Virus record (IMG/VR): IMGVR_UViG_3300021511_000003 | Location: 124,001-188,000 of that record | Length of the DNA: 64,000 bases | Direction: 5' to 3' (one strand) | Part shown: positions 197 through 45,657 of the stretch, piece by piece | Position numbering within the stretch: position 1 is the stretch's first letter | Layout: each line of letters begins with the position of its first letter | Translations under genes and position numbers: made by a program | Notes under the pieces: generated by a model | Databases searched by the model: none | What the model was told of the DNA's origin: nothing | The model's input: the letters and a program-made list of their open reading frames with translations, nothing else

Positions 197-1483
197 ATGT
201 TAGTTGAGTCGAAACGTGGAATTTGGAGAGAAGACACAATTCAAAGAGATATATTACCAATACCCTCACAAATTATGCGACAATTTGGTATCTCTGCCGA
301 AAATGCAAAACATGTATTGAAATTAGAAGATTTAAGAAAAACACCACCTAATATTATTATTGCTGAAGCAAAAAAGACTTTTGGTTTTATGCAAAATTAT
401 TTCAGTAGACAACAATTAAAAAAGAAACAAAAATATGTAATGGGACTTGGTGTTTTCCAACAACTTTTTAAAGATAGAAAAAATAAAAAAATTAAGTTGT
501 TGAAAGCTACAGTACCAAAATTTAAAAATGTTTATAAGCCATATATTGGTCAGGATATAACTGACAAAACTATTCTTGTATTCCGAACTGGAGGAATAGG
601 TGATCTTCTATTTATTCAACCCAATCTAATATATTTAAAAAACAAATATCCCACATGCAAAATCAAATTTGCCTGTGGTCCGCAATATCAACCTATGGTA
701 AATAATTGGCCTTGTGTTGATGAAGTTTTAGAGTTACCATTCTTATTTAAACATATGATAAAGTCAGATTATCATATGTTATTTGAAGGTGTTATTGAAA
801 GGTGTGAAGAAGCAAGAACGGTAAATTCTTACCATCTTTTTACACGATGGCTTGGGTTAAATTTACCAGATAATTTACTTATCCCAAGACAAGATCCGAA
901 AACAGAACTTATTGATAAATGTTTTAATATATTAACAGAATGGGGGATTGTGAATAAATCATTTGTATTGATGCAGTTACGTGCAAGTTCTCCCATTAGA
1001 ACTCCAACACATGAATTTTGGGTTAAAATTATAGACGAACTGAATGAGAGAGGTCACTATGTTGTTTTAACTGATAGCCCAAGACAATCAGAAAAAATTG
1101 ATGAATTTATTAAAATGTTGAAAAAACCAGAAATGATATTTAACTTTTGTAAACATTCAAAATCTATTGCTTATACAATTGCTCTTACTAAATTAAGTAA
1201 ATGTGTTTACGCTACAGATTCAGCATTGATGCATATTGCTGCATCTATGGATATAAAATGTTTTGGCGTATTCGGGCCATTCCCTGGTTATATTAGATTG
1301 AGTACATATCCTTATGCCTCTTGGGTTGATGCAAAAAGAAAGTGCTCACCATGCTGGATTCATTCACATAAACCTTGTCCACAATCGAAAGATGGTTATA
1401 GTCCCTGTTATGATGAACTTGTAAATACTGATGATAAATTGAAAAAAGTCATTGATAAATTTGAGGATTTATTAAACAGATGA
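197..1483 (+). CDS. Glycosyltransferase family 9 (heptosyltransferase-like)
   Basis: RTGGIGDLLF and DSALMHIAA..GVFGP motifs, C-terminal CSPC cysteine cluster typical of GT9. Confidence 0.85.
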   Translation: MLVESKRGIWREDTIQRDILPIPSQIMRQFGISAENAKHVLKLEDLRKTPPNIIIAEAKKTFGFMQNYFSRQQLKKKQKYVMGLGVFQQLFKDRKNKKIKLLKATVPKFKNVYKPYIGQDITDKTILVFRTGGIGDLLFIQPNLIYLKNKYPTCKIKFACGPQYQPMVNNWPCVDEVLELPFLFKHMIKSDYHMLFEGVIERCEEARTVNSYHLFTRWLGLNLPDNLLIPRQDPKTELIDKCFNILTEWGIVNKSFVLMQLRASSPIRTPTHEFWVKIIDELNERGHYVVLTDSPRQSEKIDEFIKMLKKPEMIFNFCKHSKSIAYTIALTKLSKCVYATDSALMHIAASMDIKCFGVFGPFPGYIRLSTYPYASWVDAKRKCSPCWIHSHKPCPQSKDGYSPCYDELVNTDDKLKKVIDKFEDLLNR

Positions 1484-2430
1484 TTTTATGCGATTATGGG
1501 TGTGGTCGAGAAGCTAAATATCAATTTAAAAATGGTAAATGGTGTTGTAGTAAAAGTAAAAATAGTTGCCCAAAAATGAAGGAATATATGTTTAGAAATA
1601 GAACAGGAAAAAATCATCCTTTATATAATAAAGAACCTTGGAATAAAGGAAAAATAAATATCTATTCTAATATAACACTTCAAAAAATGAAGGAAAATAA
1701 TACTGGTAAAAAATTATCAATTAGTACAAAAGAAAAAATATCTAAATCTTTAAAAAATAGAACCCCTTGGAATAAAGGTAAGACGTATGATGAATTATTT
1801 GGAAGAAAAAAATCTGAAAAATTAAGATTAAAACATAGTATATTTATAAAAAAATTAATCAAAAAAAATAAATATACAACAAATACAATAAGTAAAATTA
1901 AAAATAAATATCCATTATTTTATAAAATTGAAGTAATGAGATATAATCCAAATAAGTCTGTAGAAAAAGAGATTCAAGTACACTGTAAAAATCATAATTG
2001 CCCAAATTCAAAAGAACAAGGTGGTTGGTTTACTCCAACAAAAACTCAACTATATGAACGTATTAGATGTATAGAAAAGAATGGTACTGATAATTCATAT
2101 TTCTATTGTTCTGAAGAATGTAAAAGTGAATGTCCTTTATATAATTCTAAAGGTGGTGATCCATTTAAAGATATTATAAAGCCATATACACAATCTGAAT
2201 ACCAAACTTTTAGAGATTTTGTTTTAAAAAGAGATAATTATAAATGTCAGTATTGTGGTAAAAAAGCAGAACATGTTCATCATGAAAGACCTCAAAAACT
2301 AGAACCATTTTTTGCACTTGATCCTGATCTGACTTGGTCTGTATGTAAAAAGTGTCATTATAAATATGGACATAAAACAAGTACAGAATGTTCAACAGGT
2401 AAATTATCTAATGTTGGTTGTGGAGTTTAA
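1480..2430 (+). mobile_element. Free-standing HNH homing endonuclease with NUMOD3-like repeats
   Basis: N-terminal CDYGCG..KYQFKNGKWCC, PWNKG repeats, C-terminal RDNYKCQYCG..HVHH...CKKCH. Confidence 0.85.
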
Positions 2431-20454: not shown

Positions 20455-21358
20455 TACAAATGAAGTAAGAATTGAAACTTGCACCAAGTGTAAATATTCA
20501 TGTATTTTTTGTCCATATTCTACTACCTTTAATAGAAAAAAGGAAGTTATGAGTTTGGATACATTCCATTTTATTGTTGATAAAATTAAAATAGAGTTGC
20601 CGAATATAACTGGTATAACAATTTCGGGATTTGGTGAATCATTCATTGATGATACTATATTAGAAAAAATTAAATATACAAGAGAACTTGGTTATAAAGT
20701 TTATATTGTAACTAATGGATATTTGTTATCACAAACTAAAATAAAATTTTTAAATGATATTGGTATTGAAAATTTAAGAATAAGTCTTCATTCGGTTGAA
20801 TCTGAAGCTTATAAAAAATTAACCGGTGTTACATCACAACACTTTAATCGTGTTATTAATAATATTCAAACTATAATTGAAAGAACAGATATACCTTTAA
20901 TTTTAACATTTGAAATTATTCCTGGTATTAATGATGATCAAATTGAAAAAATTAAAGAAATATATAACGATAGTGCTACTGTAGAAATTTGGAAACCTCA
21001 TAATTGGGTGTCATCTTATAAATATAGAAAAGGAGAAATAATAAAGAAAACTTGTAATAGACCATTCAACAGTCCATATCAGATTCAAGTAGATGGGACT
21101 GTTAATATGTGTTGCTTTGATTATAATGGTGAATTGTTATTGGGAAATTTTTTAAACCAAACAATGAAAGAAATCTTTACAGGTGATGTATATTTAGATT
21201 TAAAAGCACATCATAAAAATGGAACTTTGGATCAAACTGATTATATTTGTAAAAATTGTGATCAAAGAAAATCCCAGGATGATATTATTTTGTATAATAA
21301 TAAATTTACAAACAATTATAGAATAGGACGGACTTCAACAAATTATGCAAAAATCTGA
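20447..21358 (+). CDS. Radical SAM/SPASM domain protein
   Basis: CKYSCIFC and C-terminal CNRPF...DG.V..CC...CKNC. Confidence 0.9.
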   Translation: MLNTNEVRIETCTKCKYSCIFCPYSTTFNRKKEVMSLDTFHFIVDKIKIELPNITGITISGFGESFIDDTILEKIKYTRELGYKVYIVTNGYLLSQTKIKFLNDIGIENLRISLHSVESEAYKKLTGVTSQHFNRVINNIQTIIERTDIPLILTFEIIPGINDDQIEKIKEIYNDSATVEIWKPHNWVSSYKYRKGEIIKKTCNRPFNSPYQIQVDGTVNMCCFDYNGELLLGNFLNQTMKEIFTGDVYLDLKAHHKNGTLDQTDYICKNCDQRKSQDDIILYNNKFTNNYRIGRTSTNYAKI

Positions 21359-22085
21359 TCAAAAACTTATTGTTATACATGGTTCTCATAATTGTGGAAA
21401 AACTATTTTATATAATTTATTTAAGAATGAAGGTGGATATATTTGTTTAGATTTGTATAAACCACATTATAAAGTATATGAACAACAATCTTTAGAACAA
21501 TTAGGTAAAAAAAATTATGAAAGATTAAAAAAATACATTCTATCTAATAATACTTCGTCGACTGTTGATTTGTGTAATGAAATTACTTTTATGATGAATC
21601 AATTTTCTGATTATGATTTTGTTATAAAACCTGGTATGTCATGGGCCAATTGGAATTATTTTATGGAATTTTCACCGGTTAAACTAGAAAATATTAAACA
21701 CTTTCATGTATTTAGACATCCAAAAATATGGTTGGCTACATGTTATAATAAGAAGTTAAATATAGAAGACTTTATTTTAAACGTCATTGGTAATTATCAA
21801 GATTATAAAGACTCACCGGAAACACATCATTTAATTAAAATTGAAGATATTAAATATAACAGTTTACTAAAAACATTACTTAAAAATACTAATTTAGATA
21901 ATTTATTACCTTATACTATTTTTGATTTGAATATATATCGCACTAATATATTTAACAGTTTTGATGATTTCAAAAACGATTTGAAAATTATTGAAATAAA
22001 GTTAAAAGAAGTATTACAATATTTAAAGTATGATATTGAAGATGTGAACACACTAATTTATTTAGAAAAATTATATAACTTATAG
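21345..22085 (+). CDS. P-loop/sulfotransferase-like protein, paralog 1 (ends in TAG)
   Basis: IHGSHNCGKT, FRHP, IKIED; aligns with 22098-22859. Confidence 0.6.
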   Translation: MQKSDQKLIVIHGSHNCGKTILYNLFKNEGGYICLDLYKPHYKVYEQQSLEQLGKKNYERLKKYILSNNTSSTVDLCNEITFMMNQFSDYDFVIKPGMSWANWNYFMEFSPVKLENIKHFHVFRHPKIWLATCYNKKLNIEDFILNVIGNYQDYKDSPETHHLIKIEDIKYNSLLKTLLKNTNLDNLLPYTIFDLNIYRTNIFNSFDDFKNDLKIIEIKLKEVLQYLKYDIEDVNTLIYLEKLYNL

Positions 22086-22097
22086 GAAAATTTTATT

Positions 22098-22859
22098 ATG
22101 AACTCTAAAAATGATCAAAAACTTATTATAATAAATGGATTATTAAATAGTGGTAAAACTATATTATTTAATTTATTAAGAAAAGAAAAAAACTTTATAT
22201 GTTTAGATATATCACCACATCATTATAAAATTTATGAGCAAGAAACAATAGATCAAATAGGAAAGGAAAATCTTATTGGATTGAAACCATATGTTGAAAC
22301 AACTGATATTTTTATTACTGAAAATTTTTTAAGGGAATTTGGTTTGTTAATGCAAAAATTTCCGGAGTATAGTTTTGCTATTAAACCAGGAAATTATAAC
22401 TGGGTTGCAAAAGAATATAATGATAAATGGTTAAAACTAAAAGAACAATATATGCCTGGTGTAAAATTGAGTAATATTCATCACGTATTCGCAATTAGGA
22501 ATCCAATGATATCATGGACCACAACATATATGAAGAATATGACTAAGTTTCTTGAATTGTGGGGAGGACAGAATTTAGAAGACCTAAATTTATATGAAAT
22601 AATCAAAATTGAAGAAATTAAAGATAATAAATTATTTAATCAAATAATTAAAAATAACGACTTGAAACAGGTTGTGCCTTATACCATATTTGATTTGAAA
22701 CAAAAACCTTTCAATAATTATGACAATCTTATGCAACAATTAAAAATAGTTGAAAAAGAATTGAGAGGGTTGATGGAATTTTTAAGTTATAAAAAAGAAG
22801 ACTCTGCTATTCAAATGTTTTTGGATGATGATTTGGATAAGTACACAGGAGGAATTTAA
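22098..22859 (+). CDS. P-loop/sulfotransferase-like protein, paralog 2
   Basis: INGLLNSGKT, IRNP, IKIEE, PYTIFDL shared with paralog 1. Confidence 0.6.
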   Translation: MNSKNDQKLIIINGLLNSGKTILFNLLRKEKNFICLDISPHHYKIYEQETIDQIGKENLIGLKPYVETTDIFITENFLREFGLLMQKFPEYSFAIKPGNYNWVAKEYNDKWLKLKEQYMPGVKLSNIHHVFAIRNPMISWTTTYMKNMTKFLELWGGQNLEDLNLYEIIKIEEIKDNKLFNQIIKNNDLKQVVPYTIFDLKQKPFNNYDNLMQQLKIVEKELRGLMEFLSYKKEDSAIQMFLDDDLDKYTGGI

Positions 22860-42139: not shown

Positions 42140-42213
42140 TGGCAGGTCAGTGGGATTTGAATCCAACTTCTGGGTTTGGAGTCCAGTATTCTTACCGTTA
42201 GAACTACTGACCT
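42140..42213 (-). tRNA. tRNA-Trp(CCA), weak T-stem
   Basis: CTGGA CTCCAAA CCCAG; AGGTCAG/CTGACCT-G-CCA; short variable region and mismatched T stem. Confidence 0.7.
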
Positions 42214-42225
42214 GTAAATATTTTT

Positions 42226-42304
42226 TGGTGACCCCGACGGGACTCGAACCCGTGTATTGAGGGTGAAGGCCTCATATCCTTATGCCTATTAGGACTACGG
42301 GGTC
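42226..42304 (-). tRNA. tRNA-Glu(UUC), C33
   Basis: TGAGG CCTTCAC CCTCA. Confidence 0.88.
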
Positions 42305-43084: not shown

Positions 43085-43470
43085 TGGTGGACCAGCTGGG
43101 AGTCGAACCCAGTTCCGCAAAAATTCAAATTAAGTATCTACACTCATAGTCAACTTTTAGATTTAGTTACCCCCACGTTCAAACACGGAGTTGACATAAC
43201 AACGGAGCCAACGGTGTACATTTGCTGGTAAGTTTGAAAATAAGAATGCCAGTTTGCAGTACCATTGCCCATTCTTATTTCGATCTCTTTACGTCGATGC
43301 CCCATCCCAATTCAAGAGAATAATTGGGTGGAACAGATTAAGCAGCTTTTGCGAAATCGGTGTAATAATCGTCTGCAATTATTGTTAGTGATAATGTTTT
43401 TACGGAGTAACATATCATTCTCCGGAGTGCAACTTTTTTTTCTTTTCCACGTCGAAACCTTTTCTGGCCC
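43085..43470 (-). ncRNA. ssrA: tmRNA, tag peptide ADDYYTDFAKAA
   Basis: 5' GGGCCAGAAAAGGTTTCGAC, 3' CTGGGTTCGACTCCCAGCTGGTCCACCA with G3:U70; tag frame 43376-43338 ends AA-stop. Confidence 0.95.
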
Positions 43471-43478
43471 ATATAAAT

Positions 43479-44036
43479 TTATAAGTTCAATAATATATTT
43501 TTAATAAAGTTTCCATCAGATCCTTTAAATCGTTTCATGATTGGACCCATTGCTTGCATTTTATTCTTGAATCTACTCATATCAAGCCCTTTTATATATC
43601 TAATAATTTCTTCTTTATTTACTTGAGCAGGAAGATATTTTTTAGCGATTTTAATATTATGTGATATTAATTTATCGTCCAACTTTTGAATTTTATCTTT
43701 GACTATTTTTTTAACTTCTGCTGGAGTCTTACCAGATACATCAGCTTCTTTTAAAAATTTTAGCTCATACAATCTTCTTTCTTTTTCTTGATTTATATAT
43801 TTTTTCAATAACTTGATGATATCATCATCGGTAATATCTTTTGATTTTTTTCCAGTTTCAGGGAACATACTTATAATTGCTCTTGAAACTGTTTTTTGTG
43901 CAATCATAATGTTATATGCTGTTTTAGTTTCTTTACTGTTAGCCAAAAATACAATAACTCCTTTCTTTCTATATTTTATTTCAATTTCCATTGCGTATTT
44001 CAGATCAGCTCTTATTCTTTTTAATATTTTACTCAT
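43479..44036 (-). CDS. GatB/YqeY domain protein
   Basis: DLKYAM, DDDIIKLLKK, YLPAQ, MQAMGPIMK...DG. Confidence 0.8.
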   Translation of the reverse strand: MSKILKRIRADLKYAMEIEIKYRKKGVIVFLANSKETKTAYNIMIAQKTVSRAIISMFPETGKKSKDITDDDIIKLLKKYINQEKERRLYELKFLKEADVSGKTPAEVKKIVKDKIQKLDDKLISHNIKIAKKYLPAQVNKEEIIRYIKGLDMSRFKNKMQAMGPIMKRFKGSDGNFIKNILLNL

Positions 44037-44061: not shown

Positions 44062-44133
44062 TGGCCCAGGTGGGGATCGAACCCACGAATGAGGGTTTTA
44101 GAGACCCCTGCTCTACCACTAAGCTACTGGGCC
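44062..44133 (-). tRNA. Amber suppressor tRNA (anticodon CUA), CCA not encoded
   Basis: GGCCCAG TA GCTT AGTGGTA GAGC A GGGGT CTCTAAA ACCCT CATTC GTGGG TTCGATC CCCAC CTGGGCC A. Confidence 0.9.
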
Positions 44134-44138
44134 TCTAA

Positions 44139-44462
44139 TTATAGTAGAAGACTCTTAAGATTATAACTATACATACAGTATGTATATACTAATATAACTA
44201 ATGAAAAACATTTAACTAAAAGAGTTGATTCCCTTTTAGTTAATTGTTTTTTTATTCCTTTGATTGTCAAATATAAAATTAATAATAGAAATGGTATTTT
44301 TGTTAATAACATTGTTGTTTGAATGCCAATAATTCCCATAAGGTAATTAATAATGGGGTTCATTTCTATAGCATCTTTGTCTAAAATAATTATAGTTGAT
44401 ATATAATCAAAAATATTTATGAGCCAGATAAATACACAACTGATAATTAAAAATTTATTCAT
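44139..44462 (-). CDS. Small membrane protein (DUF5658-like)
   Basis: NIFDYIST...EMNP; three hydrophobic segments; overlaps upstream stop. Confidence 0.7.
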   Translation of the reverse strand: MNKFLIISCVFIWLINIFDYISTIIILDKDAIEMNPIINYLMGIIGIQTTMLLTKIPFLLLILYLTIKGIKKQLTKRESTLLVKCFSLVILVYTYCMYSYNLKSLLL

Positions 44463-44749
44463 AATAAATTTAACCTTTCTGTAAACTTGCTATTCATATC
44501 AGTTGCTATTGCAGTTGTTTCATTATTCATATCTGGTTCTTTGAACTCAGTGTATGGAATTCCTTCTCTTTTAAATTTTATTTTTAAACTCTCTAACTGG
44601 TTCAAACCCTTAACACCCAAGTATATTAAGGTACCATTGTTCCAGCGAGAGAGAGGGCTGTGAAGCATATAGTCAGCAACCGCATGACCTGCTTGCACAG
44701 CCCTTTGAGATATTGAAATATCTTTACGCACAATTACGTAGAGCTTCAT
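44459..44749 (-). CDS. Pth2-like peptidyl-tRNA hydrolase (short phage type)
   Basis: KLYVIVRKD....QRAVQAGHA, F.EPD..NETTAIA, L.LL; start at ATG 44749. Confidence 0.8.
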   Translation of the reverse strand: MKLYVIVRKDISISQRAVQAGHAVADYMLHSPLSRWNNGTLIYLGVKGLNQLESLKIKFKREGIPYTEFKEPDMNNETTAIATDMNSKFTERLNLL

Positions 44750-45017
44750 CAATCTTACCTTCCCATGATAACATGTAATTTTCAATGACATGTTTACTTG
44801 GCTTGTCATTACATGAAATTTCAATCATATTATATGGAGTTCGATTAAATAATTGACAATAAGCTATATGTTTATGTCTATAGGTCCAACGATTTTCATC
44901 CAACCCATGAACAAAACCAAAAACTTTATCTTTTCTTGTCTTTTTCTGCTCTTTGATCTTTTGTGCTAAAGATTTTTGCTCTTCTTTTATCTTATTTTTT
45001 AATTCCTTGAATGTCAT
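44724..45017 (-). CDS. Hypothetical protein, first gene of the gated operon
   Basis: AGGAG RBS; YRHKHIAYC....TPY..IE; overlaps Pth2-like start. Confidence 0.75.
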   Translation of the reverse strand: MTFKELKNKIKEEQKSLAQKIKEQKKTRKDKVFGFVHGLDENRWTYRHKHIAYCQLFNRTPYNMIEISCNDKPSKHVIENYMLSWEGKIDEALRNCA

Positions 45018-45020
45018 GGT

Positions 45021-45088
45021 AATCTCCTTTTTATTTCAGTTTAATTAATACAAAATACAATGTTTTACATTATAACTGAAATAGGAGG
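45021..45088 (-). promoter_or_regulatory. SD-sequestering hairpin
   Basis: CTCC-TATTTCAGTT pairs with AACTGAAATA-AAAA-GGAG (SD of 45017); inner ATAATGT/ACATTGT stem. Confidence 0.75.
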
Positions 45089-45265
45089 TCCACGACATAT
45101 CTATGGAAATTGTGACTGTGCTAACTAGTCATCAGTCCACTCAAAGTGGCATTCTGACTCGCAACACTTATTTGCACCGTGAGATTTATTAATCTCTTCG
45201 GCGTCTTTGGCTTCATCTATTCGATGATCGCCAGAAATACCTTTATCCTCTGATTTTCTTTCCAT
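45065..45265 (-). CDS. Leader ORF with two in-frame UAG codons and RGPP motif
   Basis: AAGGAG RBS; MERKSEDKGISGDHRIDEAKDAEEINKSHGANKCCESECHFEWTDD-TAG-LAQSQFP-TAG-ICRGPPISVIM-TAA. Confidence 0.7.
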
Positions 45266-45300
45266 TATATTTTACTCCTTTGTTAACGTAATACTTCAAC

Positions 45301-45316
45301 ATTTATATTATGTTCT
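45301..45316 (-). promoter_or_regulatory. Promoter motif B driving the leader operon
   Basis: AGAACATAATATAAAT ~36 nt upstream of leader ATG. Confidence 0.6.
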
Positions 45317-45361: not shown

Positions 45362-45448
45362 TGGTGGGGGGTGGAGGAGTTGAACCACTTGCCACCGCCT
45401 AACATATTTTGGCAACGATTTTACAGACCGCAGTTAGGAACACCCCCC
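45362..45448 (-). tRNA. Non-canonical tRNA-Tyr(GUA): no D-arm, giant variable arm
   Basis: GGGGGGTG TT CCTAAC T GCGGT CTGTAAA ATCGT TGCCA AAATAT GTTAGG CGG TGGCA A GTGG TTCAACT CCTC CACCCCCC A CCA. Confidence 0.75.
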
Positions 45449-45657
45449 ATTATTTTAAGTCTTTACGTTTCCTCTCGATTACATATTCAATAACTTCTCC
45501 AAACTTATCAAATTCGATACATTTGAATTTTGTTCTTATATAAAAATAAAATAACCCAAATCTTTTTTTAACTCTATATTTACCCTTACCGTAATTAATT
45601 ATACGATAAGTTCTATTTGTATTTTTAACATGTGCTTTCCCATGATTTTATTCCTCC

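Follow-up and report, generated by a model that had tools for sequence, protein, structure and literature searches.

A conserved phage leader in which in-frame amber codons precede a predicted ribosome-stalling motif and a Pth2-like gene

Introduction

Arrest peptides of the RAPP-like class (SecM, ApdA, and ApdP) are encoded by short upstream ORFs, and the ribosome that stalls at their C-terminal core (R-A/G-P-P or RAGP) opens a hairpin that otherwise sequesters the SD of a downstream gene. Among these cores, RGPP is the strongest and depends least on context, and RSPP and RDPP are permissive (PMC12992588). Members of this class carry an N-terminal signal or TM segment as a monitoring substrate, control a Sec/YidC-type target gene, and are released by pulling force. 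In the leader-peptide attenuators of amino acid operons (trpL, hisL, and pheL), the leader ORF contains tandem copies of the codon read by the tRNA being monitored, and the position of the ribosome selects between terminator and antiterminator structures. Stop codons can also serve as sensors: an early in-frame UGA in prfB (RF2) reports termination capacity through an autoregulatory +1 frameshift. In engineered leader switches, amber codons have been placed in tna/trp-type leaders, such that translation beyond the UAG by a charged tRNA(CUA) turns on downstream genes via Rho or transcription attenuation, and doubling the UAG lowers leak from near-cognate readthrough (PMC6412442). In the eukaryotic AMD1 C-tail, only ribosomes that read through a stop codon by basal near-cognate decoding reach a downstream arrest sequence, and the resulting stall represses the same mRNA by queueing (PMC13025110).

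Here we analyze a leader in a 64,000-nt window (positions 124,001 to 188,000 of the IMG/VR record IMGVR_UViG_3300021511_000003, a 223-kb contig). The leader reaches its predicted ribosome-stalling end only if UAG codons are read through, and it precedes an operon that includes a Pth2-like gene and an amber suppressor tRNA. The design is conserved in about 70 phage contigs, and no earlier description of it was found in our literature searches.

Results and Discussion

Anatomy of the leader and operon

All sequence elements of the preliminary description (a leader uORF with two in-frame TAG codons followed by RGPP, Pro codons that double as the anti-SD, a downstream Pth2-like gene, and a CUA tRNA) were confirmed on the minus strand (Table 1). 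The 141-nt region encompassing the hairpin has a predicted folding energy of -40.2 kcal/mol (z -5.15), and none of 200 shuffles was as stable. In addition to the pairing between the Pro codons and the SD, the Arg-Gly codons pair with the start codon of the next gene, which had not been noted in the preliminary description. The promoter assigned there ("motif B") is only plausible: related 16-mers lie upstream of other genes and tRNAs in the window, and a similar AGAACA..TAAT box precedes the leader in two homologous loci, and the pattern AGAACAWWAW occurs 12 times in the window against 5.3 expected, with about half of these occurrences in intergenic DNA (80% of the window lies in ORFs of 90 aa or more). 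A scan for sigma-70 promoters and terminators gave nothing specific.

Table 1. Coordinates of the leader, the operon that follows it, and neighboring features within the 64,000-nt window.
Position	Strand	Feature	Details
45363-45449		Class-II tRNA-Leu(CAA)	Called by relaxed ARAGORN
45301-45316	-	Promoter-like motif ("motif B")	AGAACATAATATAAAT
45275-45280	-	SD of the leader uORF	AAGGAG
45125-45265	-	Leader uORF	ATG at 45265; 46 sense codons; first TAG at 45127-45125
45101-45124	-	In-frame spacer and second TAG	LAQSQFP at 45124-45104; TAG at 45103-45101
45083-45100	-	Predicted arrest motif I-C-R-G-P-P	RGPP (CGT GGA CCT CCT) at 45094-45083; the same bases form the anti-start and anti-SD strands
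45065-45082	-	Non-conserved tail	ISVIM, then TAA at 45067-45065; forms the 5' strand of the inner stem (45082-45074)
45015-45094	-	Predicted SD- and AUG-sequestering hairpin	CGUGG (45094-90) with CCAUG (45019-15); CUCCU (45087-45083) with AGGAG (45028-24); 45082-45074 with 45041-45033
44724-45017	-	A1	97-aa basic helical protein with a YRHKHIAYC motif
44459-44749	-	A2	96-aa Pth2-like hydrolase; start overlaps the end of A1
44139-44462	-	DUF5658 membrane protein	ATGA overlap with A2
44062-44133	-	Amber suppressor tRNA (anticodon CUA)	Starts 5 nt after the DUF5658 stop; ARAGORN and Rfam (69.5 bits)
43479-44036	-	YqeY-like (GatB/YqeY-type tRNA-binding) protein	Pfam YqeY 1e-5 (26.1 bits, cut-off 27); PHROG "tRNA amidotransferase"
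43085-43470	-	Phage tmRNA	Tag ADDYYTDFAKAA

The first gene of the operon, A1, has no recognizable fold relative: its AF2 model (pLDDT 94) gave no structural match with Foldseek, and the at least 162 clusters to which such proteins belong are all annotated as "hypothetical", none with a Pfam domain. A2 matches Pfam PTH2 (PF01981) with an E-value of 4e-6 and 27.5 bits against a cut-off of 23, covering profile positions 1-82 of 115, and a PDB profile hit is named "peptidyl-tRNA hydrolase" (E 0.002). In an AF2 model of an A1-A2 fusion (pLDDT 93), the Foldseek top hit is the archaeal Pth2 of M. jannaschii (2zv3), with a probability of 1.0 and a TM-score of 0.62 on the target, and the conserved VRKDL...AVQAGHA and EPD...TA(I)A blocks of A2 align with Pth2 blocks. 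A1 is fused to A2 in six loci, whereas the DUF5658 gene is present only in close relatives of the window. The amino acid identity of the suppressor tRNA could not be read from acceptor or discriminator features; the discriminator bases vary. A blastn search against phage genomes matched only the tRNA. A scan of genome contigs recovered a single MAG contig, so the cassette is not a bacterial or prophage feature.

Conservation of the leader

To assess whether this arrangement is conserved, as had been proposed as a test in the preliminary description, we collected homologs of A1 and examined the 49 distinct IMG/VR leaders upstream of them; the outcome was positive. The leaders contain a mini-ORF of 2 to about 60 codons (preceded by an SD of 4 nt or more in 45 of 49), followed by none or one further in-frame TAG, a Pro-rich end motif, and an SD-sequestering hairpin directly after the motif. 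The uORF stop is TAG in 49 of 49 leaders, while TAG ends only 52 of 406 (13%) ordinary ORFs in the same loci. A CUA tRNA follows in 44 of 49. The same arrangement was found in 11 of 11 metagenomic relatives of the window's clade, all of which keep the second TAG, with a spacer of 4-7 codons that usually ends in Pro or Thr; a CUA tRNA follows in 11 of 11. Furthermore, a blind scan of IMG/VR for the pattern M-X-TAG-V-X-K-P-P-TAA found 17 sites. In all 16 that can be evaluated, an ORF starts 50-65 nt downstream; in 15 of them it hits the A1 or A2 profile, the 5' end of that ORF sits in a predicted hairpin in 15 of the 16, and a CUA tRNA follows in 12 of 16.

Chance is excluded. A parser for an SD-AUG, TAG, and a Pro motif 15-140 nt before a gene fires on 45 of 49 homologous loci, on 1 of 260 other genes in the same loci, and on 1 of 980 shuffles, and with TAA or TGA in place of TAG it fires on 0 of 49. 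Across the leaders, 62 TAG codons lie in frame 0, against 6 and 20 in the other frames, and spacers vary in whole codons. The base after TAG is a purine in 60 of 62 cases, and Pro often precedes the TAG. Poly-Pro before the stop weakens RF1 termination, and the base after UAG also affects it (PMC6412442); a purine at this position probably favors suppression.

In several details the family departs from the preliminary description. Two ambers are present in 19 of 49 leaders, and the rest have one; the uORF is usually only M-X-TAG (29 of 46 parsed leaders have exactly two sense codons). RGPP is the commonest of several Pro motifs, the others being RAPP, RSPP, RDPP, RSP-stop, RGP-stop, and K/R-PP-stop; RGPP, RAPP, RSPP, or RDPP occurs in 19 of 46 parsed leaders, and in 30 of 46 a stop follows the motif directly, with tail length and sequence varying between loci. 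The Pro codons are themselves the anti-SD in only part of the family, and elsewhere the anti-SD starts 2-8 nt after the motif. In 32 RxPP leaders, Arg is encoded by 16 AGR and 16 CGN codons, and Gly and Pro by all synonymous codons, so selection acts on the peptide.

The SD of the downstream gene is paired in 48 of 49 leaders (median z -3.3), and in a comparison with 162 control genes the median z is -3.0 versus -0.27 (p = 5e-17). RNAalifold applied to a MAFFT alignment of 15 divergent leaders gave no consensus structure, because loops of very different length were misaligned; support for the structure therefore comes from folds of individual loci, with controls, and from a count of pairs within the close clade, in which compensatory changes occur in the inner stem.

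Inferred mechanism

Although arrest, hairpin opening, and dependence on suppression are inferred in the absence of any experimental measurement, we consider it likely that the leader is a translational switch whose input is amber suppression, in agreement with the preliminary description. In the OFF state, ribosomes start at the leader AUG and, if RF1 prevails at UAG, terminate 30-40 nt before the regulatory hairpin (measured to the first UAG; the second lies only 6 nt before RGPP). The SD and AUG of A1 remain paired, so that A1 and the overlapping A2 gene are not translated. In the ON state, charged tRNA(CUA) prevails at the UAG codons (twice in the case of the window), and the ribosome reaches R-G-P-P, where it arrests, or, in the K/R-PP-stop and RSP-stop variants, terminates slowly. 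Because the anti-SD lies within 6 nt before to 21 nt after the end of the motif, the paused ribosome would cover or unwind it and free the SD and AUG. As the tRNA(CUA) gene lies at the 3' end of the same unit, the cassette would report the activity of its own suppressor relative to RF1.

There are certain difficulties for this model. Some nascent chains would be only 7-9 residues long at the stall (for example, M-L-x-V-S-K-P-P), which is shorter than characterized arrest peptides, and EF-P may relieve plain PP pauses. Two successive suppressions would give low output unless suppression is efficient. Also, the window shows no other use of TAG as a sense codon, which leaves the presence of a suppressor unexplained.

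A link to suppression is also evident beyond the leader: TAG lies in frame inside A2 in six loci, and A2 homologs of cultured jumbo phages with CUA tRNAs (XacN1, RAS14, Serratia BF, and RsoM2USA) start with M-X-TAG, suggesting that the same hydrolase family is gated directly at the gene start. A possible ochre-gated analog in Lak-B4 (a UUA tRNA near its A2 homolog) is uninterpretable in a genome of 26% GC.

It is somewhat more likely than not that jumbo phages thereby carry a natural sensor of genetic-code state, in which UAG codons in contexts that favor suppression give access to an arrest motif that unmasks the start site of a dedicated tRNA-directed hydrolase pair (A1-A2), forming an autoregulatory loop that measures, and probably sets, the level of UAG suppression in the infected cell. 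On this reading, these genes would be the first identified targets of the "orphan" suppressor tRNAs of standard-code phages; it has been remarked for XacN1 (PMC5852040) and for the siphophage Summit that the targets of phage CUA suppressor tRNAs cannot be found. At least one target would be a Pth2-like hydrolase gene, gated either by this leader or by an amber at codon 3 or 4. More speculatively, A1-A2 might be a tRNA-directed esterase that recycles or limits the suppressor, as part of a homeostatic loop, rather than a general rescue factor. The pair may control the switch to, or the tolerance of, stop-codon suppression, which bears on how code-15 phages evolve. The leader is small (about 100-250 nt) and modular, and could serve as a compact reporter or controller of amber suppression in genetic-code-expansion work.

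Comparison with described systems

Like the SecM, ApdA, and ApdP leaders, the window's leader places an R-G-P-P motif, five codons before its stop, immediately 5' of a stem that occludes the SD of a co-directional gene, with translational activation by a stalled ribosome as the predicted output. It differs from them in lacking a signal or TM segment (the leaders of this family are hydrophilic), a Sec/YidC target gene, and pulling-force release, and in that the motif is reachable only after stop-codon readthrough; in addition, many variants are predicted to stall at PP-stop. As in trpL, hisL, and pheL, one or two copies of the monitored codon are present, but the codon is a stop, scarcity of the tRNA causes termination rather than pausing, and the output is SD unmasking; no terminator-like site lies between the leader and A1. 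As in prfB, an early in-frame stop codon is inferred to set expression of a translation factor, but the stop is UAG, there is no frameshift, the sensed quantity is suppressor against RF1, and the output passes through arrest and hairpin opening in a separate leader; the direct M-X-TAG arrangement in XacN1, BF, and RsoM2USA is closer to prfB in layout. The leader resembles the engineered UAG switches, which were built independently, in its inferred dependence on translation beyond a UAG, but it is natural, translational, and coupled to an arrest motif; if the inferred mechanism is correct, it would be the first natural regulatory leader whose input is nonsense suppression. By contrast with AMD1, the predicted stall activates a downstream cistron.

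Alternative explanations

The alternative that survives best, although we regard it as unlikely, is readthrough coupling without arrest, in which ribosomes that pass the UAG codons run into, or terminate at the foot of, the hairpin and open it in passing. The Pro motif would then be a by-product of the CCUCC anti-SD, which gives Pro-Pro in one frame in any case. Consistent with this, the Pro codons are the anti-SD in the window and in many other loci, and in 30 of 46 leaders the extended frame stops right at the base of the hairpin. However, this explains part, but not all, of the motif: in about half of the leaders the anti-SD is a separate element after the Pro codons, yet PP is kept; Arg two codons before PP is kept through AGR/CGN switches; and the motifs match the experimentally defined arrest cores RGPP, RAPP, RSPP, and RDPP.

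It is very unlikely that the phage uses code 15 (TAG = Gln) throughout or late in infection, with the leader being an ordinary arrest-peptide ORF that happens to contain TAG sense codons. The nearest database relatives of A2 include TAG-recoded Lak phages, six loci carry a TAG inside A2, and recoded phages commonly encode CUA tRNAs (bioRxiv 10.1101/2021.08.26.457843). Nevertheless, within the 64 kb examined of the 223-kb contig, TAG behaves as a stop: it separates two complete tandem paralogs that each have their own start, 80% of the window lies in standard-code ORFs of 90 aa or more, and treating TAG as sense adds less ORF length than treating TGA as sense, with no gain beyond chance. In 46 very short leaders, TAG makes up 62 codons, far above any sense-codon usage, and sits at codon 3 in 29 of 46. 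Even in a phage that switches code, the leader would still report the switch.

Equally improbable is that the element senses RF1 activity (host RF1 depletion or inhibition, or a competing phage) rather than the phage tRNA. Readthrough depends on the tRNA(CUA)/RF1 ratio, so RF1 loss would also induce, and the TAG contexts weaken RF1; however, the cassette is physically tied to a CUA tRNA gene in most loci, and without a cognate suppressor two UAGs would rarely be passed.

A minigene model, in which the M-X-UAG mini-ORF acts like the lambda bar minigenes (which appear to be linked to Pth) and generates dipeptidyl-tRNA drop-off that ties the leader to peptidyl-tRNA hydrolase demand, is suggested by the two-codon uORFs and the Pth2-like gene, but is highly doubtful, because uORF length ranges up to about 60 codons and the model does not explain the exclusive use of TAG, the in-frame second TAG, the in-frame Pro motif, or its position against the hairpin. 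A pure RNA element (an RNase III or processing site, or a tRNA(CUA)-binding leader), for which the strong conserved hairpin in a transcript that also yields tRNAs and the complementarity of UAG to the CUA anticodon could be cited, can be all but dismissed, given that the TAGs are always in frame with an SD-AUG and with the Pro motif, spacing varies in whole codons, synonymous codon turnover is seen, and no Rfam family matches the leader.

Genomic neighborhood

The YqeY-like gene next to the suppressor tRNA in the window is a possible accessory of the cassette, and is also adjacent to the cassette in two other loci. The tmRNA has the same orientation as the operon, and a tmRNA also lies near the cassette in five other loci.

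Genomic context and leader architecture

The window belongs to IMG/VR contig UViG_3300021511_000003 (223 kb) and has a GC content of 29.6%. It is a jumbo-phage region that encodes a DNA polymerase, a CCA-adding enzyme, a NAMPT-like protein, and glycosyltransferases, as well as a tmRNA and a co-oriented array of 24 tRNAs identified by ARAGORN, plus three more that were missed at default settings and were detected by Rfam or by relaxed ARAGORN. The leader and the genes that follow it lie inside this array on the minus strand (see the table). The preliminary description, which had noted an SD and a 46-codon uORF ending in TAG, a second in-frame TAG, an RGPP motif whose codons pair with the SD of the next gene, and a downstream unit comprising a Pth2-like gene, a membrane protein, and a CUA tRNA, is correct in every sequence statement. 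The RNA from 45140 to 45000 folds at -40.2 kcal/mol (z -5.15). In addition to the pairings noted previously, CGUGG (the Arg and Gly codons) pairs with CCAUG, which contains the start codon of the first downstream gene (A1). A1 overlaps the Pth2-like gene (A2), which matches Pfam PTH2 above its cut-off; A2 in turn overlaps a DUF5658 membrane gene, and the CUA tRNA starts 5 nt after that gene. A YqeY-like gene and the tmRNA follow with gaps of 25 and 8 nt.

A shared motif, AGAACAWAATWYAAAT (the "motif B" of the preliminary description), lies before genes or tRNAs at five positions and is co-oriented with them; it is a candidate phage promoter, although its enrichment is modest (15 matches against 8.2 expected at up to three mismatches).

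Coordinates of the leader, the associated genes, and related features in the window and in homologous loci
Feature	Location	Coordinates	Strand	Remarks
SD of the leader uORF	Window	45280-45275	-	AAGGAG
Leader uORF	Window	45128-45265	-	ATG at 45265; 46 sense codons
First TAG	Window	45127-45125	-	Followed by LAQSQFP
Second TAG	Window	45103-45101	-	Followed by I-C
RGPP	Window	45094-45083	-	CGT GGA CCT CCT; followed by ISVIM
TAA of the extended frame	Window	45067-45065	-	
Anti-SD and SD of A1	Window	45087-45083 with 45028-45024	-	CUCCU paired with AGGAG
Inner stem	Window	45082-45074 with 45041-45033	-	
A1	Window	45017-44724	-	97 aa
A2 (Pth2-like)	Window	44749-44459	-	
CUA tRNA	Window	44133-44062	-	
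YqeY-like gene	Window	43479-44036	-	YqeY/GatB-type
tmRNA	Window	43085-43470	-	Tag ADDYYTDFAKAA
Class-II tRNA	Window	45363-45449	-	Just upstream of the leader; weak Rfam hit, called Leu-CAA by ARAGORN at a relaxed threshold
tRNA-Glu(TTC)	Window	42226-42304	-	Rfam, 51 bits
tRNA-Trp(CCA)	Window	42140-42213	-	Rfam, 46 bits
Tandem paralogous P-loop-like genes	Window	21345-22085 and 22098-22859	+	About 250 aa each
Candidate promoter motif (16-mers)	Window	12261, 24584, 45301, 45521, 52040		
Long uORF	L004	3470-3598		
YqeY/GatB-type protein	L124	2958-3297		
YqeY/GatB-type protein	L125	3071-3294		
YqeY/GatB-type protein	L100 (LR756500)	1001-1423		
Second amber-gated leader	L100 (LR756500)	about 1830-1935		
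ORF after the second leader	L100 (LR756500)	1936-2370		144 aa
tRNA with anticodon UUA	L099 (Lak-B4)	841-913		
Region before the A2 homologue	L099 (Lak-B4)	about 1390-1500		In-frame TAA codons

Usage of TAG in the window

As far as 64 kb can show, TAG is a stop codon here. Standard-code ORFs of 90 aa or more cover 80% of the window, and treating TAG as a sense codon lengthens ORFs less than treating TGA as sense. The one long TAG-joined frame comprises two complete tandem paralogues (P-loop-like), each with its own start, separated by TAG and a short spacer.

Conservation of the amber-gated leader

Protein-guided scans of IMG/VR with A1 and A2 gave 92 loci; after removal of duplicates, 49 distinct leader sequences were found to precede an A1 homologue, with A1 identity as low as 29% and locus GC of 27 to 49%. 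All 49 have the same plan. An SD and AUG start a uORF of 2 to about 60 sense codons that ends in TAG (exactly two sense codons in 29 of 46 parsed leaders), and the same frame continues through none or one further TAG (two TAGs in 19 of 49) to end in a Pro motif. RGPP is the commonest motif, followed by RAPP, RSPP, RDPP, RSP-stop, RASP-stop, RGP-stop, and K/R/I-PP-stop; examples are MFK-TAG-IKVPP-TAG-VRGPP-TAG, ML-TAG-SNFKPP-TAG-VFKPP-TAA, MH-TAG-VNRPP-TAA, and MK-TAG-IQLLRGPP.

TAG ends 49 of 49 uORFs, but only 52 of 406 ordinary ORFs in the same loci. A strict parser finds a TAG-gated leader in 45 of 49 cases, in 1 of 260 other genes, and in 1 of 980 shuffles, and finds TAA- or TGA-gated versions in 0 of 49. 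Between the AUG and the motif, TAG occurs 62 times in frame 0, against 6 and 20 times in the other frames. The base after TAG is a purine in 60 of 62 cases, and Pro is the commonest residue before it; poly-Pro before the stop is reported to weaken RF1 termination, and the base after UAG to affect it (PMC6412442).

Eleven further loci from the window's own clade were retrieved through close A1 relatives (60-68% identity). All keep the long Cys-rich acidic uORF, two TAGs, R(G/D)PP, the hairpin, and a downstream CUA tRNA. The conserved peptide encoded by this uORF before the first TAG (..CCxxEC..EW(T/A)DD; found in the window and in homologous loci L004, L009, L039, and L118-L128) may be a microprotein in its own right, or it may tune termination at the gate.

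As a blind test, the DNA pattern for M-X-TAG-V-X-K-P-P-TAA was searched across all of IMG/VR with no protein information. It hit 17 sites, of which 12 were new contigs. In all 16 sites that can be evaluated, an ORF starts 50-65 nt downstream; this ORF hits the A1 or A2 profile in 15 of them, and its 5' end sits in a predicted hairpin in 15 of the 16. A CUA tRNA follows in 12.

Selection on the peptide and the hairpin

Because CCUCC as anti-SD would yield Pro-Pro in one frame, we tested for selection at the peptide level. In 32 RxPP leaders, Arg is encoded by 16 AGR and 16 CGN codons, Gly by all four codons, and each Pro by all four. In about half of the leaders the anti-SD is a separate element after the Pro codons. 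Furthermore, the motifs coincide with experimentally defined arrest cores: RGPP gives the most stable and least context-dependent arrest, is resistant to EF-P, and is the most avoided tetrapeptide in many phyla, and RSPP and RDPP are permissive (PMC12992588).

In minimum-energy folds from the Pro codons to the AUG plus 9 nt, the A1 SD is paired in 48 of 49 leaders, the exception being a misassigned start; median z is -3.3, and the anti-SD starts 6 nt before to 8 nt after the motif end. With a fixed 72-nt upstream window, median z is -3.0, against -0.27 for 162 other genes with an SD in the same loci (Mann-Whitney p = 5e-17), and 71% of the leaders combine z below -2 with a paired SD, against 9% of controls. 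The stems differ completely in sequence between clades. Within the window's clade, the 7-bp inner stem is 93% paired, with C-G to U-A and A-U to C-G double changes; the covariation score is 0.146, against 0.084 in shuffles (5 of 500 as high), and sliding the partner columns drops pairing to 55% or less.

Association with amber suppression beyond the leader

A CUA tRNA lies directly after A2 in 44 of 49 loci, often within 10 nt. A YqeY/GatB-type protein (a tRNA-binding domain family) recurs next to the CUA tRNA in the window and in three homologous loci (L124, L125, and L100, the last from uncultured LR756500); YqeY domains appear to help GlnRS bind tRNA-Gln in other systems, and the protein might therefore assist charging of the suppressor. 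tmRNAs also sit near the cassette in homologous loci L004, L006, L018, L021, and L023. Six loci (L016, L021, L052, L055, L061, and L087) carry a single in-frame TAG inside A2, at different positions, which is either extra gating or a sign that these particular phages decode TAG as sense.

In cultured jumbo phages, the A2-family gene itself begins with an early amber behind a good SD: MK-TAG in XacN1 (ORF364) and RAS14, MTH-TAG in Serratia phage BF, and ML-TAG in Ralstonia RsoM2USA; uncultured LR756500 likewise has MK-TAG. As a result, these genes are mis-started or unannotated in GenBank, the gene being unannotated in BF, RsoM2USA, and the related Erwinia and Yersinia phages. XacN1 and RsoM2USA are reported to encode CUA tRNAs, and the XacN1 authors could not find their targets; the A2-family genes are candidate targets. 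In Lak-B4, a tRNA with the ochre anticodon UUA lies 600 nt upstream of the A2 homologue and in-frame TAA codons precede that gene, but this cannot be interpreted in a genome of 26% GC. In LR756500, a second amber-gated leader, MK-TAG-IKITIRGPTYLF-TAA, precedes an unrelated ORF followed by a CUA tRNA; the leader module may therefore be portable to other genes.

Inferred mechanism and comparison with known systems

The interpretation in the preliminary description, that only ribosomes reading through both ambers reach RGPP, stall, and switch on the operon, is supported by strong comparative evidence, although arrest, hairpin opening, and dependence on suppression are inferred. In the mechanism we propose, if RF1 wins at UAG, the ribosome leaves before it reaches the hairpin and A1-A2 stay off. 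If tRNA(CUA) wins (twice in this window), the ribosome would reach RGPP and arrest, its footprint would cover the anti-SD and anti-AUG strands, and A1-A2 would be translated. Two gates would square the dependence on suppression and cut leak from near-cognate readthrough, as engineered multiplexed-UAG switches show (PMC6412442). Because the tRNA gene ends the same unit, A1-A2 output would follow the tRNA's own activity.

The element, which is widespread in large phages, is proposed to work like SecM/ApdA/ApdP-type arrest leaders, but without their signal sequence and Sec/YidC target, and like codon-sensing attenuators, but without the terminator. We found no description of a natural amber-gated leader in six full-text searches of the literature. 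The closest analogues in logic are the prfB in-frame UGA sensor, engineered UAG leader switches, and the eukaryotic AMD1 readthrough-arrest tail.

The A1 and A2 proteins

The function of A1-A2 is unknown, but recurrent amber gating in three independent layouts argues that it is tied to suppression itself. We tentatively favor recycling or limitation of the suppressor, which would form a homeostatic loop; the alternatives are general rescue of the consequences of readthrough, or a feed-forward action against termination. A1 and A2 are fused into one protein in six loci, and an AF2 model of a natural A1-A2 fusion is confident (pLDDT 93, pTM 0.85); the C-terminal half of the model matches archaeal Pth2 (2zv3, probability 1.0) and Atu0240. 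A1 alone (pLDDT 94) is predicted to be a basic helical bundle, for which no structural relative was found. A1 has at least 162 clusters in metagenomes, all unnamed and without a Pfam domain, and is essentially absent from 185,579 bacterial and archaeal genomes, with a single MAG hit.
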